A model generated the notes under the pieces. That model searched no databases and had not been told where the DNA came from. It saw nothing but the letters and a program-made list of their open reading frames with translations. Below, one piece after another: positions 13,901 through 59,200 of a stretch of DNA of 64,000 bases. The first letter of the stretch is position 1; every line of letters begins with the position of its first letter. The DNA is from Utricularia gibba (taxonomy: Eukaryota; Plantae; Magnoliophyta), in NCBI GenBank assembly GCA_002189035.1, contig CM007989.1, positions 5,766,001 through 5,830,000 on the forward strand, given 5' to 3'. Made by a program: the position numbers and the translations under genes.

Positions 13901-14250
13901 TCTGCGTTTGAGGTTTCTCAAAATTTTTAAATTCCGTTGCTTTTGTGACATACAATGTCTACAAGAAACCCAACACCATCGTACCCTTAGGCTTCAATTC
14001 TATTAAAAATAAAGTTGCATATCTAAGGGAGTAGAATGAAGAGCTTTGCTATAAACTAGAGTGGTATGTGAGCTGTTAGGCCCACACCGGACCATCTCTG
14101 AGTGGCTCCAAGTCACAATGGAAGTTGATTATCTTGGACGTAAATGATATGCTCGTAGACATCATATTGAAGGGTGGATCGTCAAGGTCATGAATCTCTC
14201 CAAATGAATTCATATATGACCGATTAGGTACCTCTTTTATTAGTACAACA
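11000..14250 (-). mobile_element. Athila-like 3' internal remnant with ORF2/env-like fragment, interrupted by a solo LTR
   Basis: ORF 12069-12389 (ELFIVWCLLYKKPLNLEAILAKQM) resembles Athila ORF2-type proteins; boundaries approximate. Confidence 0.4.
12480..13975 (+). mobile_element. Solo LTR, copia Angela-like, 1496 bp
   Basis: TGTTGG...CCCAACA with perfect 5-bp TSD CCATC (12475-12479, 13976-13980). Homologous to 60263-61628 (inverted). Confidence 0.9.
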
Positions 14251-15792
14251 TATGTTTCTATCTTTTATATACATTTGTGTATTAACACTTATTGAGAGAT
14301 CATAAAAACTTTTTGATTTAATGTATGCAGTCTATCTATATCCATATACCCACAACTTTATGGGTAGTGCTTGGATAATTTCGATATAGACATCTAGTCA
14401 TCCTAAAAATCACACACTAATAAAATGATTAATATTTATTGTACCTTTAAGATGTTTTTATTGTACTAGCAAACAATAAAAATTTAGGAGCTATATTATT
14501 CATGCCAACATTATATATTACCTTTTTAATTTATAAATGTAAGTACTATTTTTCTTATTTTCTTTATAATTTGCAACTTCTAATAACATTGTTCTAGACT
14601 GATTCCATGCCATAAAATTTATGAAACATTTTGTTTCAGATCATTCCATCCATGAATTTTCCAAGTTGCTCCAATTGGTTCAAGTGCGATAGGAACTTTT
14701 GTTTTTTTTTTTCTAATGGTAATTGTTTCTAGAGGATTAAGCAAATTGTAATCTCTTATCTCTAATAAGCTAAAAATAAGTATATTCTCTAGTGAAATGA
14801 GGTGTAAATGATTTACTATATCTTATGATAATGTTCCTAAGTCATAGTGGCAAATATTTTCCAAAATTATCAAGGTCATTGAAATGAAAAACACAAATGT
14901 TTTTCTCCCAAATGAATTTTTCTAATGTGATTGAAAAATCCCAGAAAGTTATCAAAGCCAACGGCAATGAGAATAAGGAGTAGGCAAATTAGATACGATA
15001 AATGCCAAGCTATATATCCTTCATGCAAAAATACACCAACAGCCAAAATAAGGTATAGAAGAGGTGTGAAAAGACATGGCAGCCAAAAAGAGGGGATAAG
15101 CGAAAATAATACATCACAATCAAACTAAAAAAATTAATTAACAATGACAATGTTATAAAAAGTAAATCGAATTATAACTTGAACACTATTTCTAGTTATA
15201 AAAAAAATTAATTGAATCAAGACCAATTCAACTTGAGTATAGGTATTAAAGCAATAATGTCATATCAAAAAATTAAAATAATATAATCAAATATATAAAA
15301 AATTAGAGATTATTAATAATTGATTGAATATATTTTTTTCACATATAATTTATATTTTTTTGTGTATTTGAACTTCACATATGTGATGTCAGACCCATTG
15401 CATCCTTAAATTTGAACAAAAACGAGATCGAAAGCATGATTTTAGCTTTTAATGGTGTTGGTTTGAAATTTTACCGAAAACATAGTTTTTCAATTTTGGC
15501 TTCTCTTTATGCGTTTTTCAACATCCTTGTTCTCCAACTTTCTTAGCTTCACACATCCTTGTTCTCCGACAATGCGGTGTTTGAGTTGTCGTCCGTGTGA
15601 GGAGTGCACACTCTTTTCAAAAATTGGCAATTTTGGGGGCCATATCAAATGCATTGCCTCACATGATGCAATTGGAAAAGACTTTGAGAACGCAACCCAA
15701 AGCTAGGAGCTTTCTGCATATATCTGAATCGGGTGTTCTCGACAAATTTCAAAGTTCAAATTCACGGCACAGCGTACTCATGAGTTCATGCA

Positions 15793-17026
15793 TCAGTCTT
15801 CGGATTCCACTGGAAGCCCTTCCTTGAACCAGGTATAGGTTCCTCCTTCCAGATGGAAGACATTGGAATAGCCATTCAGAACCAGCAGATAAGCTGCTAT
15901 GAGTGACCTGCAATGTACTTGTTATAGGTTGTTGCTTTTGCACTTTATAGAACATGAAGACAGCTACATTACATTCTGCAACACATGAGCTTGATATGGT
16001 ACCTTGACTGCTGGCCCTCGGGGAGATTTTGTGATGGCCTCATTGTCCCTCCCGCTGAACATGCCACAATGATCTTTGCATCCTTGGCTAGTTTGGACTC
16101 AACACCTGCGAGGTATACATAAGCTTTTAATCTCATGTTGTATACCATACACACAGAGTTTGATAGTAGAGGTGAGCTCATGTTACTTTGCAGAAACTCT
16201 GGGTTCTCTTCAGTTCCTGAAAATATGCCGAAGAACGCAAATGCAGCCCTCCTTGCAATGTCCCAAGCTGTCCACTCCTTTATCAGCCTGTAGATTTGCA
16301 CACCGATGGCTCCTGCTGGGTGACCCTAACATTCACACAAAGGAAAAGCACTGATGATATACAAGCATTCGATCCTCCATTCCAAACAAGAGAATTATTT
16401 CTTCTATCCATCGATTGAGCTCTAGGTTTGTGAAATGAAAATGCATTTACCTGTTTGAATTCAGCCTCCGGCCGTACGTCAAGAATCACGAAGTTGTTCT
16501 CGTTTTGAAGCCTCAAAGCCTCCTTGACATCCACACTTCTCACCTATGGAATCTCAATACCACCACCTCCTTTTATTTCTTCAGTTTATAGTCTACTCAA
16601 TGATGCATATAACTCACACCATGCTTCCCATAGACATGATTGGAGCTTGAATTTTTATAAGCATTGTGTTTCAGAGAACTCTAGCGGAACTACTAACCTT
16701 TTTTTCCAGAAGAACCTGCCTCTTGACCTTCCATTCTTCTTCAGCTGGTGAGAACAAATCGTATCAGTTCATTGATTAATAAATCTGGTTCAACATAAAA
16801 ACACCCTGATTCAGCTCGACCCAACAAACAAAACTTATCAGAACATCGACAAACCTGGAGACTTGGGGCGCTTTGTTGCGGTACAGCGGATAGTGAGGCG
16901 TGAATAGTTGAGCGATCTCTTCGTTGTAGCTGCGTCGAGGAAGACTACTTTTGCAGAAGTGGAAGGAGATTCCAGAGACAGAGGAGCATGAAAGTTGTGT
17001 GATCTGATGGGTGTGATGCACGCCAT
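15793..17026 (-). CDS. STR14: Rhodanese-like domain protein 14, chloroplastic; exons 17026-16855, 16744-16698, 16543-16451, 16325-16187, 16105-16003, 15907-15793; 222 aa
   Basis: VRSVDVKEALRLQNENNFVILDVRPEAEF, IYRLIKEWTAWDIARR, IIVACSAGGTMRPSQNLPEGQQSRSLIAAYLLVLNGY. All five introns are GT-AG with consistent phases (669 bp CDS). Ser/Thr-rich transit peptide. Confidence 0.95.
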
Positions 17027-44363: not shown

Positions 44364-46166
44364 CACGCGTTTCTGAAACTTTGAATGTTGTTCCCGAAGC
44401 TTATAAATATACCATGAGCATGAATAAATAATTCTTTGACCCTGTTGCCCATCGATGAGAATCCTGAAGGCACTTGTAGATCGGTTTTGTCTTTTTAGAA
44501 GCATTGAATTTAGGGATATGATCGGAGAATACAAAATCCTAGACATCGTAGCATTAAAATAGAATGTAAATAGCAGTAGATAGAGACTAGACTGGTGAAA
44601 AATGACCATTCACAAACAAAGATCCATATAACCAGTGGAGGCAGACGGTCCACTTCAAATATCCCATGATTAGCCTTCAACTACATGGTCATACTATACC
44701 ATACTGCTAGGAGAGTAGGTTCACACCAATTATAATTTTTAAAGTTAATTGTGACAAAGTGCATAGAACAAGCAAACTTGATTGGTTGCTACACTTGGGT
44801 TACTGGAACTGTTGTCAACTTTACAAGCCAATTATACGTGACTCATACAGAAAAAACCAGTAGGGAGAGTTATTCTTTACATAAAAGGCAATCAGAACAT
44901 AGTTACAAGGCTATTGATGACTCAACCTATTTTATAAATCCAAAACAACAAAGTATATCTTATTGCAAAACATTAAACACCCTACCCTGTAAGGCTTTTC
45001 AAAACAATAAAAGTATGTTTTATAAAGAAGAAACTCATAAACTATAAACCAAAGAAAAGATCCTTCCAAGAAACCAAGGAGAACAAATCATATATGTTTC
45101 AAAAAAACGTTATGAGACTATTTCTTATTTTGAATAGTAGCATTCATCTCACTTTATTTTCTTAATACATATTACTTCTTACAATTTAAGATGTACAAGG
45201 TATTATTCCCCTAAAAACCTCATGGTTTTTTTTCTACTCCTTTGCTTCCGCTACATTATCCCCCAATATTTATCAACCTACCTGAGTCACCATTATCCTA
45301 TCCTAAAGTTGGCATATAATATTTTCTATAGATTGCAATTGCAACCCTTCTAATGTCTCTTATTACTTGTGTTGTCTTTTTTTTTACTCATATTGAGCAT
45401 AGAGCTTGATTATTGAGATAAACGAATCACTTAATTGCATATACAACACTCCTAATCTCTCAAGCAGGAAAATATATTCACAATTGGCTAACAATCGCAT
45501 TCATGTAATGATGAACATTATCTTTATATAATATTATTCATTTCAAACACTTAACTTTACAATTTCATATATTAGCTTCCTAGATAATTGATGAAAGTAA
45601 ATTTTCTATAGGTATCACAGGTCTACCTATTTTCCTCATCAAAACATTTATAAGCTGAATAATCAATTCAATAATATTCTATGAAAAAATAAATATAATA
45701 GCAGCAAGTCTTAGTGGATCCACTAAGGCCTCGTTTGTTAGGTGGGTTTAACCCTCTAAACCCTTGGGTAAAAAGTGTTGTATATGTTTGTTGGGGTGGT
45801 TTAGTAAAACACAAGGGTTTGTATTATCCCGAATTAAACCTGCAGCTGCTTGTTTCACAAAACCCACGTGTGAGGTGGGTTTTGAGAAACCCATCTCACA
45901 CAAATACAACTTGGTCGATAATACCCTTCTACTCCAAAAGCAAATTCGCAACAGTGAATCTGTGTATTTGTTCATCCTCTTCAAAAATAATCTGTTGGGT
46001 TTTTGCAGGTACATGGTGAGTGAATTCGAATTCTGATATTTTGACGAAAATCCATATTTCAATTTAAGCCAAGAGTACTTTTTTTTTGTTTCGCATATGA
46101 TGGAGTCGGTTTTTTTTTTTTCTGAAAACTGCAGTAGGTTGTGCATTGCTTATTGAGGCTGTTGCA

Positions 46167-47495
46167 ATGGTTTCAAAGAAGATTATTTTGGTTGCCCTTG
46201 CTGCGGCACATTGTGTTGGTCAGCATCTATGTATTATGCGAGTTATGATTGTTATAATGTTGCATTTCTGTTGTACACCAACCGATAGGAGAATTCGGTT
46301 CTCATACCGAGAAAAGATACTACGACAAATAGAGCATTTGACTGCCTTATTATCTGATTCAAGGAATGCTTGTCTTGAAAACTTACGATTAAGTGCAGAT
46401 GTCTTCAACAAGTTATGTTATGTTATTCGAAGTAATGGTAGACTAACCACTTCAAGGTATGTCGATGTTCCAGAGCAAGTTGCATTGTTTTTGGGTATTT
46501 TAGTTCATCACAGGAAAACAAGGCAATAGAAATTTGAATTCATGCGAAGCAGCTGGACAGTGTCCAAATATTTCAATGTGGTATTGTCGGCGGTGCTATC
46601 ATTGCACCAAAATTTACTTAAGACACCTATGCCAATTGATGTTTCTGATCTCAATTCTAGCTTCAGATTTTTCGAGGTATGCAAGAAGATTTTTCATCGT
46701 AGTTGTGGATGTGCAACGTGTATTCTGCATTCTGTAACTTTCTGCTCTATTTTTAAGAATTTCTTGGGTGCATTGGATGGTTCATATTTTCAGGTGAAAG
46801 ACAAGAATCAGGATAAATCAAAGTGGAGGAATCGTGTCCACTAATGTGTTAGGAGTGTGTGATGATAAGCTCATGTTCATCTATTTGTTGTTCGGTTGGG
46901 AGGGATCCGTTGTTGATAGCAGGGTGCTGCGAGATGCAGTTTGTCGACAGAAACGCAGAGGGATTTCTAGCACCCTACAGGGGTGCTGTTGATTAACTTT
47001 CATGTATTCCATTTTTTTGTAGGGCATTATTACTTATATGATAATGGCTACACAAACGCAGAGGGATTTCTAGCACCCTACAGGGGTGTTCGGTACCATC
47101 TGAAAGAGTGGGGTGCCGGGTCCATGGCTCCACAGAATGCGAAGGAATATTTCAACATACGGCATGCTTCTGCAAGGAATGTTATTGAGAGGGTATGGGG
47201 TCTAATGAAAATGAGGTGGAGTATTTTACGAAGTTATAGTTTTTATCCTATTAAAACACAAACACGTATCATACTCACATGTGCCCTGCTTCACAATTTT
47301 ATTCGGCGAGAAATGCCAACTGATCCATGGGAAGAGGTCATTCCGGAAGAGTACCAAAATTCGGATTCACAGGAATATGAAGATGATGAACATATTTCCT
47401 CCATAGGAAACTCAGAGGAGTGGACACATTGGCGGGATTCAATGGCTGAGATAATGTTTGCGCAATGGAGAGAGACCACACGAAGAAGGGTATAA
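46167..47495 (+). pseudogene. Harbinger DDE nuclease (HARBI1/ALP1-like), disrupted
   Basis: LRLSADVFNKLC, VPEQVALFLGIL, GALDGSY, TNVLGVCD, GWEGS, YLYDNGY..FLAPYRGVRYHLKEW, HASARNVIERVWGLMKMRW. TAG at 46527, a frameshifting deletion near 46835, intron 46677-46757. Confidence 0.92.
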
Positions 47496-47941
47496 GGTGT
47501 ACTAATGAATCCTGATATTTTATTGGTTTGGCTTAAAGACATTTTATTTCATTTTCCAATAGTTGATAAGCATTGCGTTGTGTTGTATTCATATTATGCA
47601 AACACATCAGTTATTCCAGACATGATTTGCTTCTTACATTGGGTTATTTCCCACGGTGAACTGCCTTATTTATGCAGGACTGTTGTCACAGCAAATGTGA
47701 TACAGTCACTGGAAACTAGAATTTGCAGTGCCTGGAAATTTATGATAGGATTGAAGGATGCTTCAGGTTTCCATACACTGTTGACTCATACGTCTGGGTG
47801 CAACTATTGCATGCTCTACACTATCTACATGTACATTGGAAGAATTGCATTCTAGGCACTGTAAATATCTAATCTCGGTGCCTAGATGAAATGTGTTCCT
47901 AGCACCGCAATACACCGTTATCGGTGCCTGGAAGACCAGTG

Positions 47942-48357
47942 TACCAGGCACCGCAAAAGTTTTGTCTCGGTGTCTACAAGACACCCCTTGTAGGCACTGC
48001 AAAACGCTGCTCTCAGTGTCTGGGTGACATGTGTCCCAGGCACTGCAGAATGCCGCTCTCGGTGTTTGGAAGACACGTTATTTTAATATTTTTATTAGCG
48101 TTCGATCCTTAGTTATACTTTGGATCGAGCGTTAATATAAATTTAAAATAAACAAATATCCACTCGATTCGAATGAAACCAAAGGATCAAACGCTAATAA
48201 AAATATTAAAACAACGTGTCTTCCACACATCGACGTCCAAGAGCGGCATTCTGCAGTGCCTGGGACGCATGTCTCTCAGACACTGAGAGCAGCGTTTTGT
48301 AGTGCGTACAAGAGGTGTCTTGTAGACACCGAGACAAAACTTTTGCGGTGCTTGGTA
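47942..48357. repeat. Long fold-back (arms ~190 bp, AT-rich loop ~30 bp)
   Basis: TACCAGGCACCGCAAAAGTTTTGTCTCGGTGTCTACAAGACACC... pairs with ...GGTGTCTTGTAGACACCGAGACAAAACTTTTGCGGTGCTTGGTA. Confidence 0.9.
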
Positions 48358-48872
48358 TACACCGAGACCAAAATTTAAAATTATAAATTACAGAATGTTT
48401 CCTTTATGGGTTTAAATTAGTTCGAGATTACATAACATTTTTTTAATTTTATATATATGAATTTATTTAAAATCACCTACTTTTTTACGTTAATTAAGTT
48501 TGATTTTAATTTTATTAACTATTTTAATACCTAATTAATTGATATATATCATATTCATTTAAATTCAAGTAAAAGGCTGCTCTCAAGGTCTGGGAGACAT
48601 GCATCCCAGGCACTCCAGAATGCCGCTCTCGGTGCCTGGAAGACACGCTGTAGACACTGCAACCTTTGAAATAGGTGCCTGGAGCAATCACGGGCCGGAA
48701 TGAATATTAGGCCTCGCGTATTTGGGCCTCATAACAAACCCTCCGGCCCAGTCCTCACCCTCCTTCACCACGCACCTAATCGCTGCACACTGGAAAGCAT
48801 GGCACACCGTCCCCACCTTAACTGCATGGTCCCTCCCCCATTTACTTTCCTCTGATCTGTCTATTTCAAGAA

Positions 48873-50713
48873 ATGCTTACTTCCAAAAAACTCCAACTTC
48901 GGTTTGCCATCCCAGAGACGTATAATCTATGGGACAAGGCAAGCGATGAGACAATTGACGGTGTGGTTCCACCCAGGGTGGGAGTAATCGGGTTTTCGGT
49001 GTCCACCGAACACTTTCGGTGTGGACTTCGCTTGCCACCACCACCATTCATATGCGAGTTGCTGGCATGTTTGGAGGTCCCATTGTCCCACCTGACACCC
49101 CACTCAATCGCTCATGAGTGTGTGCATGGAGGAACAAATTACTTCGGCCCTACCAGTTTTTTTTTGCCGTAAGTGTGTGCATTCGAAACTGAAAAACTAA
49201 TCATTTCTCGCTGAAAGGTAAGCCAGGTATTGCACTTGTGAATTCTATTCGGAGTGGATATGATGCATGGTGGACAAGCTTCATTTGGGTGTGTCCACCA
49301 GAAGACCTCTGAATTCCAACTACTCTCGGCTCCTCCAAGAAAATTGGAAAGGCAAAGGGTAATGTGTGATGTAGTATGGTTGCATGGATAGTGTACTGTG
49401 ATTTATGATATTCGATTATCCATGTTGTAGGATTTGATAAACTATCGAAGCAGGGGCTGGATGCCTTGTTGACTATGTTTAGTGAAAAGAGTAAGGCATT
49501 GAGTGACATAGTACCCCCTGTGGTGGACGCTGCCGGTACTCGCCACTTCTGCTGTGGTCAAGGAAGAGTGATACGCGAGCGATCAAAGCCTGACGACGTG
49601 ATCATTGAGGAAGAGATGTCACTAGCATTTGCATCTGATCGACAACAGGATGTAGGGAGCAATGTGGAGGAAGACAACTCGCAACCAACTGCTAGTGTGG
49701 ATGTGGACAGAATCCTGGAAGAGAATGCCCAACTACGTGCAAGGCTAAATTGGTATGAAAGTAGTTGGGCATACACTGGCCCCAGTTCATCGCCCAGGCA
49801 ACAAGTGTGCAAGCTCCTTGTGTTGGACGTCAACAGAGTGCTAGCAGACATTGTCTTCAAAGCCAAGTACCAAAGGTTGCATCGAAAACCAGATGCTGTG
49901 ATATATGGGAGAAATAGTAAGACACCGTAACATTGTCTCATGGCTGTGTCATGTTCAACCAATCCATTTTTTCTTGGTTTGGCAGTCTTCCTCAGGCCCT
50001 TTGCTCATGAGTTCATCGAATGGTGTCTTGCAAACTTTGATGTCGGTATATGGTCTTCAAGGGGCGCGTAAGTCCCACTCCATGAAATCTGCAGAGCATG
50101 TGCTGCTATCTAATACTATAACATCTGTCTATGTTCTATAGTACACAACTACATGACATCACCAAGTGGGTGTTTGGGCCAGATGCATACACCTTGCTGG
50201 CTTTCATATGGGATGCATCGAAGACCACTGAAACGCATGTACGTGTGCATGATAATGGGTCAAAAGCTGCTGTGTTGAAGGAGTTGTCGTGGATTTTGGG
50301 GGAAGATGAAGGCTTCTTGGGTTGGTATGATGCAACCAACACCTTACTTATTGACGACTCCCCGTTCAAGTCCATCAGAAACCCAGTTCAGTCTATCTGC
50401 GATCATATGGTCTGATACGCATGTTTCCTACTGACATTTAGGTCATGGTCTTATTGTGCCACAGCATGACAACGCTGTCTTCCCGACGCCATACCAGTAC
50501 ATGGATGCAAGAGATGCTGCATTAGCTGAGTTTGGAGAAATACGCATCTTCCTTCAAGGTCTACTAGAAGCAAATGATGTACCGAGTTTCGTGAAGCATG
50601 CACGAATTGGATAGCCTCCGTTAGATGCTACTCACCCACTGTGGGATTATTACAAAGTTCTTGCTTTAACATTCATAGCATGTAACAGTAGTTTGAATTT
50701 CGGAACATTATGA
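48873..50713 (+). pseudogene. Chimeric cargo gene: Tat extra-ORF-like N-terminus spliced to an FCP1/NIF (HAD-fold) domain; introns 49359-49430, 49917-49985, 50068-50141, 50386-50464
   Basis: FRCGLRLPPPPFICELL..PLSHLTPHSI and HFSLK..DAWWTSFIWVCP, then KLLVLDVNRVLAD, IFLRPFAHEF..FDVGIWSS, NTLLIDDSPFKSIRNP|HDNAVFP, PLWDYY. All four introns are GT-AG and phase-compatible. Stops near 49310 and at 50612; frameshifts around 49110-49200. Confidence 0.8.
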
Positions 50714-50905
50714 TGTTACTCACTCTATTTTAGTTATGGGTTTTTCAATATACACTTCATAAATTACAAAAAACTAAACATACGTTAAATATTCTTATAT
50801 GCATATTCATTTAAAATAATACATTAATTTAATATTTTTATTAACATTCGATCCTTAGGTATGATTCGGATCGAACCTTTTTTTATTTTAATATTTTTAT
50901 TATCA

Positions 50906-51216
50906 TTCGATCCTTAGGTATACTTTGGATCGAATGGATATTTATTTATTTTAAATCTTAATTAACGTTCGACCCTTAGGAGCAATTTGGATCAACTATA
51001 CCAAACAAGGGAACACAGGTGTGGTTTATTCATAAACCGTGCCCGTGTACATACCTAGCAGCACCACAAGGGCACACGGGCGTGGTTTATGCAGAAACCA
51101 TTCCCGTGTGCTCTTGTTAGGTATACACGATCCAAATTGCTCCTGAGGGTCGAGCGTTAATATTTATTTAAAATAAATAAATATCCACTCGACTCGAATC
51201 ACACCTAAAGATCAAA
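50906..51216. repeat. Second long fold-back, same repeat family as 47942-48357
   Basis: TTCGACCCTTAGGAGCAATTTGGATC pairs with GATCCAAATTGCTCCTGAGGGTCGAG; 51148-51219 is a direct copy of 48123-48200. Confidence 0.85.
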
Positions 51217-51244
51217 CGCGACTTACATGCACTCAGTTGGTGCA

Positions 51245-51742
51245 TTGATGCTAGGCACCGTAAGAGCATATTTGTGGTGTTTGAAAAGATATAATGCATG
51301 TCTTCGAAGAGCAATCCAGTACAGTCAATACTTAACACCTAACACGCGAGAGGTTGGGCTGAGTGCCACACACATGCAGTTTACTAGCGCATCGATGCCA
51401 GGCACCGCAAGAGCATATTCGCGGTGCCTTAAAAGATATGATGCATGTCTTCGAAGGGCAATCTAGTGCAGTCAATACTTAACACCGAACACGCGAGAGG
51501 TTGGGCTGAGTGCCACACACATGCAGTTTACTAACGCATCGATGCCAGGCACCACAAGAGCATATTCACGGTGCCTGAAAAGATAGGATGCATGTCTTCG
51601 AAGGGCAATCTAGTGCAGTCAATACTTCACACCTAATACTTGAGAGGTCGGGCTGAGTGCCACACACATGCAGTTTACTAGCGTATCGATGCCAGGCACC
51701 GCAAGAGCATATTTGCGGTGCCTGAAAAGATAGGATGCATGA
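51245..51742. repeat. Tandem array, 147-bp unit, ~3.4 copies
   Basis: AAGAGCATAT recurs at 51262, 51409, 51556 and 51703. Confidence 0.92.
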
Positions 51743-51973
51743 TAGGCACTGCAACCTTTATTTGCGGTGCCTAGAAAGGGACGAGTCCTACTGTTCTGCT
51801 TTCTATAGGTTACAGGGGCTTGATAAATATATTTGGTTACACAAACTAAAATCAGATAGCAGCTACTCATGGAAAACATGTACAGCGTAATATTGTCATG
51901 CAAAGCAAAATGATCGTCATGATACATGGACATCATAAATGGATATGATCAAAACAACAAAGGAAAAACAACA

Positions 51974-53055
51974 TCATAGACCTCTCACAATCCCATCCAC
52001 CATAACCTCACGTTCTGCACTATTGCTGTCCAGAAAAAGCTGTAGCTTTATGGGGTTACTCAAGATGACTTCAGTCACTCCTAGACGCTGCATTGTAGTT
52101 AATTGCAATGGCATCCCTCTGATGATGTCTGCAGCAGCATTTCGACGTTCCCGTAGGTCATTGTTTTCAGCAGTAAGTATTTCTCCCAGTTGTGCGATGG
52201 CATCATTTGTTCGCTTACTCATTTCTTTCAACTCCTCCACCAAGCTATCAAGTTCTGGACCTTGCCTCCTCTTCTTCTTCCTAGGTTCATCACCACTGGT
52301 TGGTGTAGTGTGATTACCTGTGCGACCTCCAGGAGTCCCTCCTAATGAGGGATACTCTTCATATGTAGAGGATGCATCATGTGATCTTTGTTCACCATTT
52401 TTTTCCGAGTCAACCTCCACTTCAGGATACTCAAGAAGATGCACTGGTTGTTCCACATCGGCCATAGAGTCATCAGTCTGCTGTGTTGCATCAGCAGCAT
52501 CAGGGACACATTCTGCAAATTCTCAAGTGGCTCTATCTTTTCCAAAGATGATGCACCAATCTGGATAGTAAGGCCAACGCCTAAACCACAACAAATTGTA
52601 CACCTTCTCATTGTGCTACACATGTAATCCATAAGTGTACATTAATAATCTCACAGGAACTACCTACTACATATACATTAGAACAACAATACCTGTTTGA
52701 ACTCCACCCACAAATCCTCACTAGCATCTACCATGTTTGTTGAGTTATCATACCCGGTACTTGACTTGTTGAGAAAGTCAGATAGGGCATTGTAATCTTT
52801 TTTCCAGCTATGAATCTTTGATTGCATGTGGGGAGTGCCTCTGATATCTGAACCGGGACACAATTTGAGGAACGCCTCCTCTAGTGCTTGAAGATAATTA
52901 CCTTTGAATCCATTCTCTGCTTTCCACCCACCTTGAATGATATCCTTTAGAGCGTGGATCAGAAAGCACTCTTCATCAGGTTTCCACTGTCTTTTGGTCT
53001 TAATGTTATCACCACTTCTCACACGTTTTGTTGTAGGCACGTTTGCTCCAACCAT
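51974..53055 (-). pseudogene. Harbinger Myb/SANT-like DNA-binding partner; exons 53055-52693 and 52615-51974
   Basis: RQWKPDEECFLIHALKD..GWKAENGFK..YL..LE; SKIHSWKKDY; WCIIFGKDRAT*E (premature TGA at 52523-52525); LQLFLD..SAER. Confidence 0.9.
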
Positions 53056-53949
53056 TTCTGCAACTAACACATAAGTGCACAACCCATGACATAACCACAA
53101 TGCATGTGTAGCTCAATATAGCACAAGAAGTATAATAACATTATATGGGTTTCAGGGGCACAATTCACAGCCATATTACTCAAAAAACATCACACACACT
53201 AACACCCAGTCGCTCAATCCACGTGGTTAAGGTTATTCAACCGGCAAATGAAATAAACGCCTCAAATTCGAGAAAAAAATACCTGGTGCATCACCCAATA
53301 CCCAATTTTTCGGTAGATCAGACTTGCTCCCAGAGTTGCATGAGCCGAAGATCCATGCACATCGTAACTTGAGGGTTTCGAATTCCCCAATCTGAATCTC
53401 ACGTTTCTACATGTGGGGTCAAAATAGGATAATAAGATATTATATTATATATAAAGGGTATATTAGGAAATTCATATTTTCTAGTATTGAGAACCTATGC
53501 ATAAACCCTTCTAACAAACATACAAAATTGATAATCCCATATTATTGAACCCTATCTACCAAACACATACTTCATTCTAAACCATTATTTATGGAATACA
53601 ATAAACTAAAATAATCTAAACCCTTTTAATTTAAACCCACCTAACAAATGAGGCCTAAGAGTAATGAATTTTCAATTACATTTCTTTAAAATATTGTTAA
53701 ATTAAAAACACTTGAATGAATATTTTAAAACTGATATAAATAAATTATTTAATACTTTAATTTATATGTTTGGTATTTATAAACATTGAAAAATATTAAT
53801 TAAATATAATTCTCAAAAATATGTTTGTTATTTATTATTCAAATTCATTTCATTGAATTATTTTATTAAACCAATGAATATGTGATATTTTCTTCATAAA
53901 GTCGTTTGAACATTACATGTAATTTGCATCAAGTGAGTTTTTTTAAGAG

Positions 53950-54285
53950 CATATCTTTTTATTTTAAATTTGCATTATTCATAGTTTTATCCTTATGTGT
54001 TATTTAAATTAAATGCCTTTTTTATTTTAAATTTATATAAGTGTTATTTGGATCGAGTATCTATTTTTTTATTTTAAATTTATATTATGCATCATCCGAA
54101 AAAATGTTAGTTACATTGAGTATCTATTTTTTATTTTAAATTTATATTATGCATCACCCGATGTTATAGTATTATTTAGATCGAATGACTCTTTTATTTA
54201 TTTTAAATTTGTATTATATATCATTTGATCTTTAAATATTATTTAGATTGATTGCTTATTTTTTTATTTTAAATTTGTGTTATAT
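53950..54285. repeat. Degenerate AT-rich tandem repeat (~45-70 bp units)
   Basis: TTTTATTTTAAATTT occurs six times, often with GATCGA. Confidence 0.55.
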
Positions 54286-56205: not shown

Positions 56206-59200
56206 GTCAATAAGGCATTGATGATAATTTCATATTTCACCACCTTTACCAAATGTATTATATTCAAATTTCTCATAAGTGTATGACTCAAGATGAATAC
56301 AAGTATGCATTTGTAAATATAAGTTAAATTTATGATGTTAAAATAGAAGGTAGTTTGCAAAATTTAAAGTGTAAAAGATAACACTACTACATTTCTAATA
56401 TACCTGTAAAGCGAATCATTGTCAATTATGTGTTATTAACATTGTAAGACACATCCCACTCAAATGCCAATGGCTTCATCTACTGTATTCGAAAATCCAT
56501 TTGAGTATTCCTATCAATTAAGCCCTAAAAAATGATTAATATAAGTAACATTAGTTTTTAAAAATATTGATAATATATACATTATATAACACCTTACGTA
56601 AATTGCAACATCAAAGTGTTCAATACACCAATTCAACAATTCAACAATTCTCTAGTAAAAAGTCCCAAATACATTCTATATTAAAAGAAATATGTAAGGA
56701 GCTAATTTTGATAGTTAATTTAAAAAATTTATCAAAATTAATTAATGTGATAAAATAATCAAGTTGTCATGGAGTCAAAAAATAATTTATTTTACCTTCT
56801 TGATGATATATTTTCATATTCGAACTATGAACACGATTGTCTATCAAAATAGTTTTATATAATGATAGATCACAAAAGATCTCATTTATATCAAAGATAC
56901 ATATTTCCTTTCAATTAGGAGATCATTGGGGATTACTTCAACTGGTATAACTTACTCATCAAACGTTGATGTCACTCCATGTTGTATGTTTATATTTTCT
57001 AGTTCTTGTTCTTCATCTTTTGTAACATATACATCATCTCTTGGCACATTATATCTTACCGTACGACATACAAATCGGGGCTCAATGTCTCAAAATGATA
57101 TTATTTTACAATTGAAAAATTCAAATAATGATTTTTTTCTACATTTAAAATGATAATAACTATATTAAATGAATAAAATATGAGTACAAATAATAAATGT
57201 AGTGCATTTAATAAAATGTAAATTAATTAAAAAATACAATTACTTAGCAAAACAATAAAGATATATAAAATCAATTATTTATAAATTAATAGGTTACTCT
57301 TAAAAAAACCAAACTAAGTTTCAATTCTAAAATGCATTTATAGAAAAATTAAATAATTTTTTATAATTTTTAGCTTGCCTGTCATCTTCTTCAACTACCA
57401 TTCATGGAAAATCAAATCAATAATTACAAGGTAGTGCAACTCATATGAAGTATGTTGTCCAATCATTATTCCCACTTTGTATACCCCTAATCAATGAAAT
57501 ACAAGTCTATAGTGAAGTGTATAACCATTAGTTTTTTTATTATAAGTACATACATTTATAGCAAAAGAAATATCAAGATCAAGGAATATGTTTTCTTCAT
57601 TACAAATCTCAAGAAAGTCTAGAACGTACCGTATTGATTTTGAGGTCAATTGGATTAACAAAACATCAATACAATGAAAATTGAAAAAAATAAATGGCAA
57701 GATTGGCAAGTGAAATCCACAACAAAAATATTCAGTAAAAATAGCTATATCATTAGTATCAACTCATTTCGGTAATAAATTGGTAATCTTCTCATAACTA
57801 ATTTTGTTGAATATTTTGTATTCATTTAAAACACCAAAATATACCTTGAAGTTAAAATAGTATCTATTTATTCTAGAAGACATAAGTGAAACTCATATTA
57901 AGTTAAATAGATCACCAAAATACACTTATATACTTATGAATAATATTTTTAAAAAAATATTTTAAAATAAGCTATTTTTTGGATTCATAAAGTCAATTTT
58001 GGAAAACCACAATTGTTAGTTCAATTTGTAAATTTGGATTCCCAATGACCATTGAAATGCTAACTTTGAAAAAGAATAAAAAAAAACTAGTAAAAGAAAT
58101 TGCATAAAAATATATTGTGCGGGTGTGTTTTGGGTGAGGAGTAGAAATGGTATATGAATTTCTATTTATAATTTATTACTCAATTGTAGTGTTAACGATC
58201 TCTAAAGAACCCTAATTCCTCAAAAATTATATATAACATAATCCTAATTTGTAGTTGTCTAATTAAATTATGATATTTTATATATAAAAAAGTATAGCTA
58301 GTAAATATTAATCAGAATTCATCTTAAATATCGAAAAAGAAATTTTAGGGGAAATATCATAAAATATCAAAATTAACATAATGAAATATCACATTTTAGG
58401 GGAAATATTCTAATATGCATTACTAAATATTACAAATAGCCAAAAAAAAAATATTTTTTAAATTTCTTTTTAATAAATACAACTTAAATATAATTTAGCA
58501 TGTTCATTGAATTTTTTACACCTTGTAAATGTTTTTTTTCATACAATTATATTTAATTAACATAATAAGATTCAATGTAATTACATTATTAAATTATAAT
58601 CGTATTGTTTTCTCTGATGCATAATTAACACAAGATGGAGTATGACTATGTCAAAATATTTATAAACTCAATAATGTTTTTGTTATTTTAAAGTTATTTA
58701 ATTCAAATTTAAAATTATAAACTTAATATAAGTTATTTAAAGTTATTTAAAATCAAATACTAATAATTTGGATTGAATAGTTATTACTTTTTATTATTAA
58801 GAATACCATTTTTTTCCGATTATGTATTTTATATTTTGTGTTCCATTTTATGAATAATTATGGGTTATTTTCAATAATTTTTTCTATATTTTTAAAAAAT
58901 AGATTTTGACTGATTCTTACAGATTTTACTTTATCAATTTTTTATTCATATCATATCATTTGTGAATGTTGAAAACAATTAACACAATAGTTATGTCCAC
59001 TATCAATTATTCTTCTTTATTACAAGAAAATTTGCAATTTTTTTATTTTCCAAGTCCATGGCTTTTGAGTTCATTATGTATAGAGTATTTTTTAGGGGTA
59101 ATATATTCAATTATAGAAGTTAAATTTCTTATGACAAACCCCCTATACAAATCATACATTTTTATATAGATATTATTGAATGATCTATAATTCGAATTAT

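Follow-up and report, generated by a model that had tools for sequence, protein, structure and literature searches.

An FCP1/NIF-domain cargo between the core genes of a high-copy PIF/Harbinger transposon family in Utricularia gibba

A 64,000-nt stretch of Utricularia gibba DNA (GenBank assembly GCA_002189035.1, contig CM007989.1, positions 5,766,001 to 5,830,000; the whole stretch is called the window, and positions are counted from its first letter) contains a PIF/Harbinger transposon at 45727-53655 with a third, spliced gene between its DDE transposase gene and its Myb-like gene. PIF/Harbinger elements are textbook two-gene transposons. The third gene, here called the cargo, encodes a complete domain of the FCP1/NIF fold. 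The element in the window is one decayed copy of a high-copy family, and the cargo is very probably family-wide and captured as DNA. The standard layout of the family comprises a DDE transposase gene (+), a chimeric cargo in which a TRP28-like part precedes a complete NIF domain (+), and a convergent Myb-like gene (-). In the explanation that we propose, the NIF part has been amplified along with the element since its capture, and the cargo may act as an accessory protein of the transposon. For this explanation as a whole, its functional part included, we see an even chance.

The element is 7,929 bp long and is flanked by terminal inverted repeats (TIRs) and a TAA duplication. An inverted-repeat search returned arms at 45723-45751 and 53631-53659, which hold the left TIR GGCCTCGTTTGTTAGGTGGGTTTAA (45727-45751, +, 25 nt) and the right TIR (53631-53655, -), with one mismatch between the two. 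With up to 3 mismatches allowed, the 25-mer matches the window at these two sites only, and shuffled sequences are expected to give none. Target-site duplications of the sequence TAA lie directly outside the TIRs at 45724-45726 and 53656-53658. The TIRs start with GGCC and the 3-bp TAA duplication is of the TWA type typical for PIF/Harbinger. The transposase gene at 46146-47495 (+) has a Pfam DDE_Tnp_4 match in 46983-47495 (+, E = 3.6e-13) and 342 homologues (best E = 6.6e-55), many of which are named ALP1-like or HARBI1. The Myb/SANT-like gene at 51974-53055 (-) has two exons and a Myb_DNA-bind_3 match in 52678-53100 (-, E = 7.8e-11). These genes are convergent and their stop codons are 4,478 bp apart. 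The structure is thus that of a PIF/Harbinger element, with a DDE_Tnp_4 gene, a Myb/SANT-like gene, TIRs and a 3-bp TWA duplication. The original prediction, made from the sequence of the window, had described these TIRs, the TAA duplication and the convergent DDE (+) and Myb/SANT (-) genes, all of which were confirmed. Of the four Pfam families that it had named, DDE_Tnp_4 and Myb_DNA-bind_3 were likewise found, along with a partial Transposase_28 match and an NIF piece.

The description of the transposon as complete holds for its structure, that is for the ends, the target-site duplication and the gene modules, but not for its coding capacity, since both core genes are broken. Three lesions disrupt the transposase gene: its frame is interrupted by a TAG at 46527-46529, a frameshift near 46830 displaces the ...STNVLGVCD...GWEGS...DSRVLRD block from the reading frame, and the segment 46947-46985 recurs as 47050-47088, a filler duplication of 39 bp. 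The site of this filler duplication differs in other copies, as seen from loose contig ends at 46949 and 46990. The Myb gene is disabled by an in-frame stop at 52523-52525, between FGKDRAT and EFAE. The copy in the window therefore lacks the intact pair of core genes that autonomy demands, which is a statement about this copy and not about the family. Because it is unable to make its own proteins, the copy could be mobile only if intact copies supply transposase and Myb protein in trans.

The cargo gene consists of four exons on the plus strand with GT-AG borders, and the joined frame is open over 319 codons to a stop codon. Exon A (49431-49916) encodes an orphan linker with a coiled-coil-like stretch (ATG at 49475), the start of the NIF domain (49811) and motif I, LVLDVNRVL. 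Exon B (49986-50067) contains NIF motif II (GIWSS), exon C (50142-50385) the NIF core with LLIDDSP, and exon D (50465-50614) the NIF C-terminus and the stop codon. All motifs quoted when a spliced FCP1/NIF-domain gene was first proposed between the core genes are present. Pfam reported an NIF piece in 49940-50071 (+), and exon B alone scored 20.4 bits, which is under the 21.8 cut-off. After splicing, cargo residues 127-319 can be aligned to Pfam-confirmed NIF domains over the full length of the domain (best E = 4e-47, 38-45% identity), so the spliced cargo holds a full-length NIF domain (PF03031). Alignment of exon C to a profile of the host subfamily by hhalign gave a probability of 98.9%. 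The 126 residues ahead of the NIF domain had no match in protein databases, in 178 NIF homologues or in the ESM Atlas, where the linker region gave sub-threshold matches only. Exon A (161 aa) had no match within the allowed length range among 5.8 billion proteins, and of its 126 pattern matches in JGI metagenome contigs none was confirmed.

Read depth provides evidence that the cargo belongs to the family and not to this copy only. Contigs of three DNA runs from the same species (X8, X12 and X14, from three different studies) were placed on the element at a minimum of 85% identity, and depth was expressed as the mean summed word depth, which is not a copy number. In X8 the depth was 1.3 in the left flank, 91 over the transposase (46000-47599), 93 over the cargo (48800-50599), 91 over the Myb gene (51900-53099) and ca. 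1.7 in the right flank. The corresponding values were 31, 584, 487, 749 and ca. 63 in X12, and 363, ca. 1,475, ca. 814, ca. 795 and ca. 325 in X14, in which the element flanks are themselves repeated. Depth rises at the left end of the element and falls at the right end in all three runs, and in X8 and X12 it is the TIR-containing bins in which these steps occur. The cargo was covered by hundreds of contigs at 85-99% identity, most of them at 90-99%. In X8, ca. 39% of the listed kinds of change were C>T or G>A, a pattern to be expected of repeats that are methylated and silenced. In one X12 contig, 47797-48079 is linked to 48674-48893 through 30 other letters; this joint (48076 to 48675) indicates a further copy in which the cargo adjoins the transposase-downstream region and which lacks the 598-bp segment that separates them in the window.

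The contrast between inside and outside, together with the flat profile over the three modules in X8 and X12, leaves no room for a one-off capture or a unique host gene. The original prediction had weighed a three-gene Harbinger family against these two possibilities, and the three-study depth data bear out the family, in which the cargo has approximately the depth of the core genes (X8 and X12) or roughly half that of the transposase (X14). A one-off capture would fit the finding that no protein among representatives of 15 billion predicted proteins exceeds about 52% identity to cargo exon C; it is refuted by a cargo depth that equals that of the core genes in X8 and X12 and collapses at the TIRs. 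A syntenic host NIF gene merely flanked by two TIRs is ruled out by the same data. A host-type NIF gene of Fraxinus, moreover, sits among ordinary genes; its neighbors are a TCP gene and a Bromo_TP gene, and its surroundings are free of transposon parts. We consider the chance that either of these alternatives holds to be negligible.

Parts of the 4.4-kb spacer between the core genes differ between copies. The segment missing from the X12 copy (48077-48674) is rearranged. It holds an AT-rich repeat resembling a miniature inverted-repeat transposable element (MITE) at 48075-48214, an inverted duplicate of the neighboring sequence 47939-48062 (pairing with 48237-48360 over 124 nt at 93%) and a direct duplicate of 48001-48077. 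On the other side of the cargo a nested AT-rich MITE-like palindrome (50821-51219) is followed by a tandem array of 147-bp units (51242-51741, ca. 3.4 units), 468 bp of which are absent from other copies (joint 51290 to 51759). The palindrome, the repeat at 48075-48214 and further copies located beyond the right end of the element (53946-54282) form one family; words characteristic of this family are TAAAATAAA and TCGA(T/C)TCGAAT. The depth of the AT-rich repeat was 57,000-67,000 in X14 as compared to ca. 100-600 in X8 and X12, which indicates that its abundance or recovery differs greatly between samples. The nested MITE-like repeats, the local rearrangement and the 147-bp array, which make up the rest of the spacer in the window copy, are most likely later additions.

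Since inverted copies of one repeat flank the cargo, with 111-nt arms that are 77% complementary (48104-48214 and 50883-50993), the cargo could be regarded as part of a separate nested Pack-type unit, bounded by these arms, that inserted into one Harbinger copy. Several observations oppose this. The copy seen in X12 keeps the cargo without 48080-48673, which contains the left arm; the repeat also occurs outside the element; its depth in X14 is up to ca. 80 times that of the cargo, as for an independent, abundant MITE-like family; and the depth of the cargo follows that of the Harbinger element in X8 and X12. Independent nested MITE-like repeats, and not Pack-type ends, account for the palindromes on both sides of the cargo. 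The nested unit is largely refuted by the arm-less copy, the independence of the repeat and the depth data, and we rate it as highly improbable. The long, near-perfect hairpin adjoining the cargo (47939-48062 with 48237-48360) also raises the thought that the module acts at the RNA level, as a source or target of small RNAs, through its palindromes or its similarity to host NIF genes or to the TRP28 sequence of Retand retrotransposons. Such a role is very unlikely, since the hairpin is part of the copy-specific segment that another copy lacks, and the ca. 40-45% protein identity to host NIF is too distant for cross-targeting by small interfering RNAs.

The exon structure of the cargo points to its source. 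Of the three cargo introns, the first two (after ...YGRN and after ...GIWSSRGA) are located at exon borders of the Fraxinus host gene, which indicates that the NIF part was captured as DNA and not through mRNA. We infer, with good support, that its template was a host gene belonging to the DVNG subfamily of NIF proteins, which is specific to plants. None of the 178 NIF homologues contained TRP28, DDE or Myb pieces, and the 30 that were analyzed with Pfam (including the top 13 by E-value) were host-type NIF proteins with no transposon domain. A tree of the cargo with host NIF proteins, as had been proposed, could be built and revealed a very long cargo end branch (1.43 against a median of 0.19), but it did not place the donor: long-branch attraction pulls the cargo to deep-branching streptophyte sequences, so the donor lineage cannot be named. 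To our knowledge the plant DVNG NIF subfamily has no assigned function. Three Asteraceae host proteins of the DVNG type (P0004, P0007 and P0013) carry a fused DUF724 domain, and two NIF-matching stretches are present in each of P0004 and P0007; this fusion may hint at a partner of the host subfamily.

The transposase has its nearest database relatives in Lamiales (Buddleja, Perilla, Striga, Sesamum and Salvia; 55-61% identity). In all six Lamiales loci with the nearest transposases (56-61% identity) a homologous Myb gene adjoins the transposase gene, and in none of the six was NIF or TRP28 similarity found within 10 kb. The Myb gene is in tandem, 0.2-0.45 kb downstream, in five of these loci (L001, L002, L004, L005 and L006), whereas in the Salvia locus (L007) it is convergent and 3.5 kb away. 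With a convergent Myb gene at a distance of 3.5-4.5 kb in the Salvia locus and the window, gene order and orientation evidently vary within this Harbinger group.

The active-site motifs set limits to what the cargo protein might do. Motif I of the cargo reads D-V-N-R-V in place of the catalytic DxDx(T/V). In nearly all of 103 aligned host relatives this motif is L(V/I)LD(V/I/L)NG; the second catalytic Asp is thus missing across the host relatives as well, which makes its absence a trait of the plant subfamily rather than damage to the cargo. The cargo retains the motif I nucleophile Asp and the motif IV DD, and an Asn occupies the position of the general-acid Asp, as in the host relatives. With these residues, the cargo would be expected to be a phosphoprotein-binding or slow phosphatase module rather than a typical phosphatase of the RNA polymerase II C-terminal domain (CTD). 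A profile built from ten host domains matched only UBLCP1 among PDB sequences (E = 3.5e-4). The action on RNA polymerase II CTD phosphorylation proposed in the original prediction is weakened by this single match and by DVN(G/R) replacing DxDx(T/V). CTD-phosphatase activity of the cargo is doubtful in view of the DxN in its subfamily, and the link of NIF domains to CTD dephosphorylation serves here as a loose analogy at the family level.

Upstream of the NIF exons lies a fragment resembling Transposase_28 (TRP28, PF04195) at 48873-49168 (+; Pfam call in 48873-49172), which ends at a GTAAGT donor. The segment 48990-49169 scored 27.8 bits against PF04195 (cut-off 26.2), with a match to just positions 3-40 of the 69 in the profile, and contains the motif G-LRLP..PF...L. 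A word-based search with the TRP28 exon against 5.8 billion proteins gave no candidate homologue. PF04195 corresponds to an antisense open reading frame (ORF) of Retand Ty3/gypsy retrotransposons, the role of which is not known (PMC11963269). The window fragment compares to the Retand ORF through a PF04195 match that is just above the gathering score and partial (38 of 69 positions); it is located inside a DNA transposon, upstream of an NIF domain. A second TRP28-like stretch is found at 57626-57850 (-), with 33% identity to the cargo TRP28 over 75 aa, one stop and no Pfam call; this is probably what remains of an ORF from a retrotransposon.

In our judgment there is an even chance that the cargo serves the transposon as an accessory protein under selection, or did so until recently, instead of being carried along as a passenger. 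The main rival is a pure hitch-hiker: a TRP28-NIF fragment transduplicated into an ancestral master element and copied in bursts, with a frame that has stayed open by luck in a fairly young copy. This account, to which we assign somewhat less than an even chance, has background in its favor, as most plant transposon transduplicates are thought to be non-functional (Pack-MULE literature). The conservation pattern is suggestive of constraint. Among 50 near-invariant columns, defined as at least 90% conserved in hosts, the cargo keeps 39, as compared to 29.5 ± 4.6 in simulations of uniform decay to equal overall similarity (P = 0.035); among host proteins the mean is 95% and the minimum 70%. Two further observations are of the same tendency. 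All five small insertions listed in the cargo gene span are intronic (49940, 49967, 49969, 49974 and 50449), so the listed indels avoid exons. The four-exon frame is open although both core genes are broken, with zero lesions in 0.96 kb of cargo against at least four disabling lesions in ca. 2.2 kb of core coding sequence, a difference with a chance probability of ca. 0.17.

A decayed cargo relic was found elsewhere in the window, at 14029-14400 (+). It has 43% identity to the cargo over 65 aa (14029-14223), several stops and a motif I reading KLIILDVNDML, and the matching part includes the cargo-specific coiled-coil/linker stretch EENAQLRARLNWYESSWAYTGPS. No DDE or Myb remains were detected near it. 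A decayed relic with the cargo-specific linker indicates that the module has long been present in the U. gibba genome, and the persistence of the module through more than one wave is a further point against a mere passenger. At a distance of ca. 2 kb from this relic, ORFs at 15969-16543 (-) read by eye like exons of a rhodanese-like domain gene (NFVILDVRPEAEFKQ), which looks like an ordinary host gene.

A number of findings weigh against a selected accessory protein, and most of them would be natural for a hitch-hiker. Read depth cannot separate selection from a burst of one master, which would spread a neutral passenger equally well, and in X14 the NIF exons reach ca. one quarter of the transposase depth. 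The end branch of the cargo is very long, and the cargo has changed at 11 of the 50 near-invariant positions, one of them the G of DVNG, which is replaced by R. The indel evidence extends only to the changes listed, and it is weakened further because T-rich introns such as those of the cargo are prone to indels. The four changes in NIF exons that are private to the window copy (49583, 50195, 50508 and 50532) are all non-synonymous, as in decay after insertion. In the window copy the TRP28-NIF fusion is unreadable, since splicing from the strong donor at 49169 to the strong acceptor at 49431 would not keep the frame; among single GT-AG introns, an in-frame TRP28-NIF splice was possible only with combinations of weak sites. 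Finally, there were no cargo words in seven RNA runs and no cargo transcript in the contigs of two RNA runs of small size (X1 and X2). As a whole, the case for selection on the cargo is no more than suggestive. As to RNA from other parts of the element, one 670-nt contig of X1 matches 45729-45811, the left TIR with 58 subterminal bases, with 11 differences in 83 nt, and continues into unlike sequence on both sides of the match; X2 gave nothing on the element. The X1 contig may represent a transcript with a related MITE or TIR fragment in it, or carry-over of DNA into the RNA library.

We also considered a more far-reaching version of the accessory-protein explanation, in which TRP28-NIF would be a selected accessory gene perhaps common to Harbinger and Mutator-like elements, and its DxN protein would bind or slowly dephosphorylate a host phosphoprotein, thereby aiding transposition or blunting silencing. 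This version is tentative and on present evidence rather unlikely. If it were true, an accessory DxN NIF protein would represent a new class of transposon counter-defense or host-manipulation factor. If the cargo is selected, it would provide a natural handle on the function of the DVNG NIF subfamily and on the recruitment of host signaling folds by transposons; if it is a passenger only, it is a clear case of gene capture at the DNA level followed by many-fold amplification. Evidence for selection, expression or sharing with Mutator-like elements would raise the interest of the system considerably. Amplified cargo copies also inflate the counts of 'FCP1 homology' genes in genome annotations.

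In the literature searched, no paper joins Harbinger elements with NIF or FCP1 cargo; a search for FCP1 homology and transposable elements returned Trichomonas papers only, and Harbinger elements go unmentioned in a 2026 review of gene capture in plants. The canonical two-gene PIF/Harbinger elements include PIF and Pong of grasses, and ALP1 and HARBI1 are domesticated relatives. The family described here shares with the two-gene elements the DDE_Tnp_4 transposase, the Myb/SANT-like gene, short TIRs with GGCC and the TAA duplication, but adds a third, family-wide module between the core genes. Captured accessory genes are carried by Mutator-like elements (MULEs) with a Ulp1 protease (KI-MULE/Kaonashi) and by VANDAL elements with VANC. 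A Harbinger family with a host-derived third module would join this short list of accessory-gene DNA transposons. As in MULE-Ulp1 and VANDAL-VANC, a host-derived domain is amplified by an autonomous-type element beside the transposase; the present family differs in being a Harbinger and in having as its cargo an NIF fold behind a TRP28 fragment. Compared to the plant DVNG NIF proteins, which are annotated as 'FCP1 homology domain-containing' or 'TIM50-like', the cargo has the same full NIF domain with LVLDVN.., GIWSS and LLIDDSP and shares introns 1 and 2, whereas its identity to them is 38-45%, the G of DVNG is changed to R, and an orphan linker behind TRP28 replaces the host N-terminus. Pack-TYPE elements are non-autonomous TIR elements that carry gene fragments (PMC8903248). 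The cargo resembles their content in that a host gene was captured as DNA with introns kept. Pack-TYPE elements, however, have no transposase sequence between their TIRs and their captures are usually unique, while the window element does have transposase sequence there and its family combines both core genes with a shared cargo.

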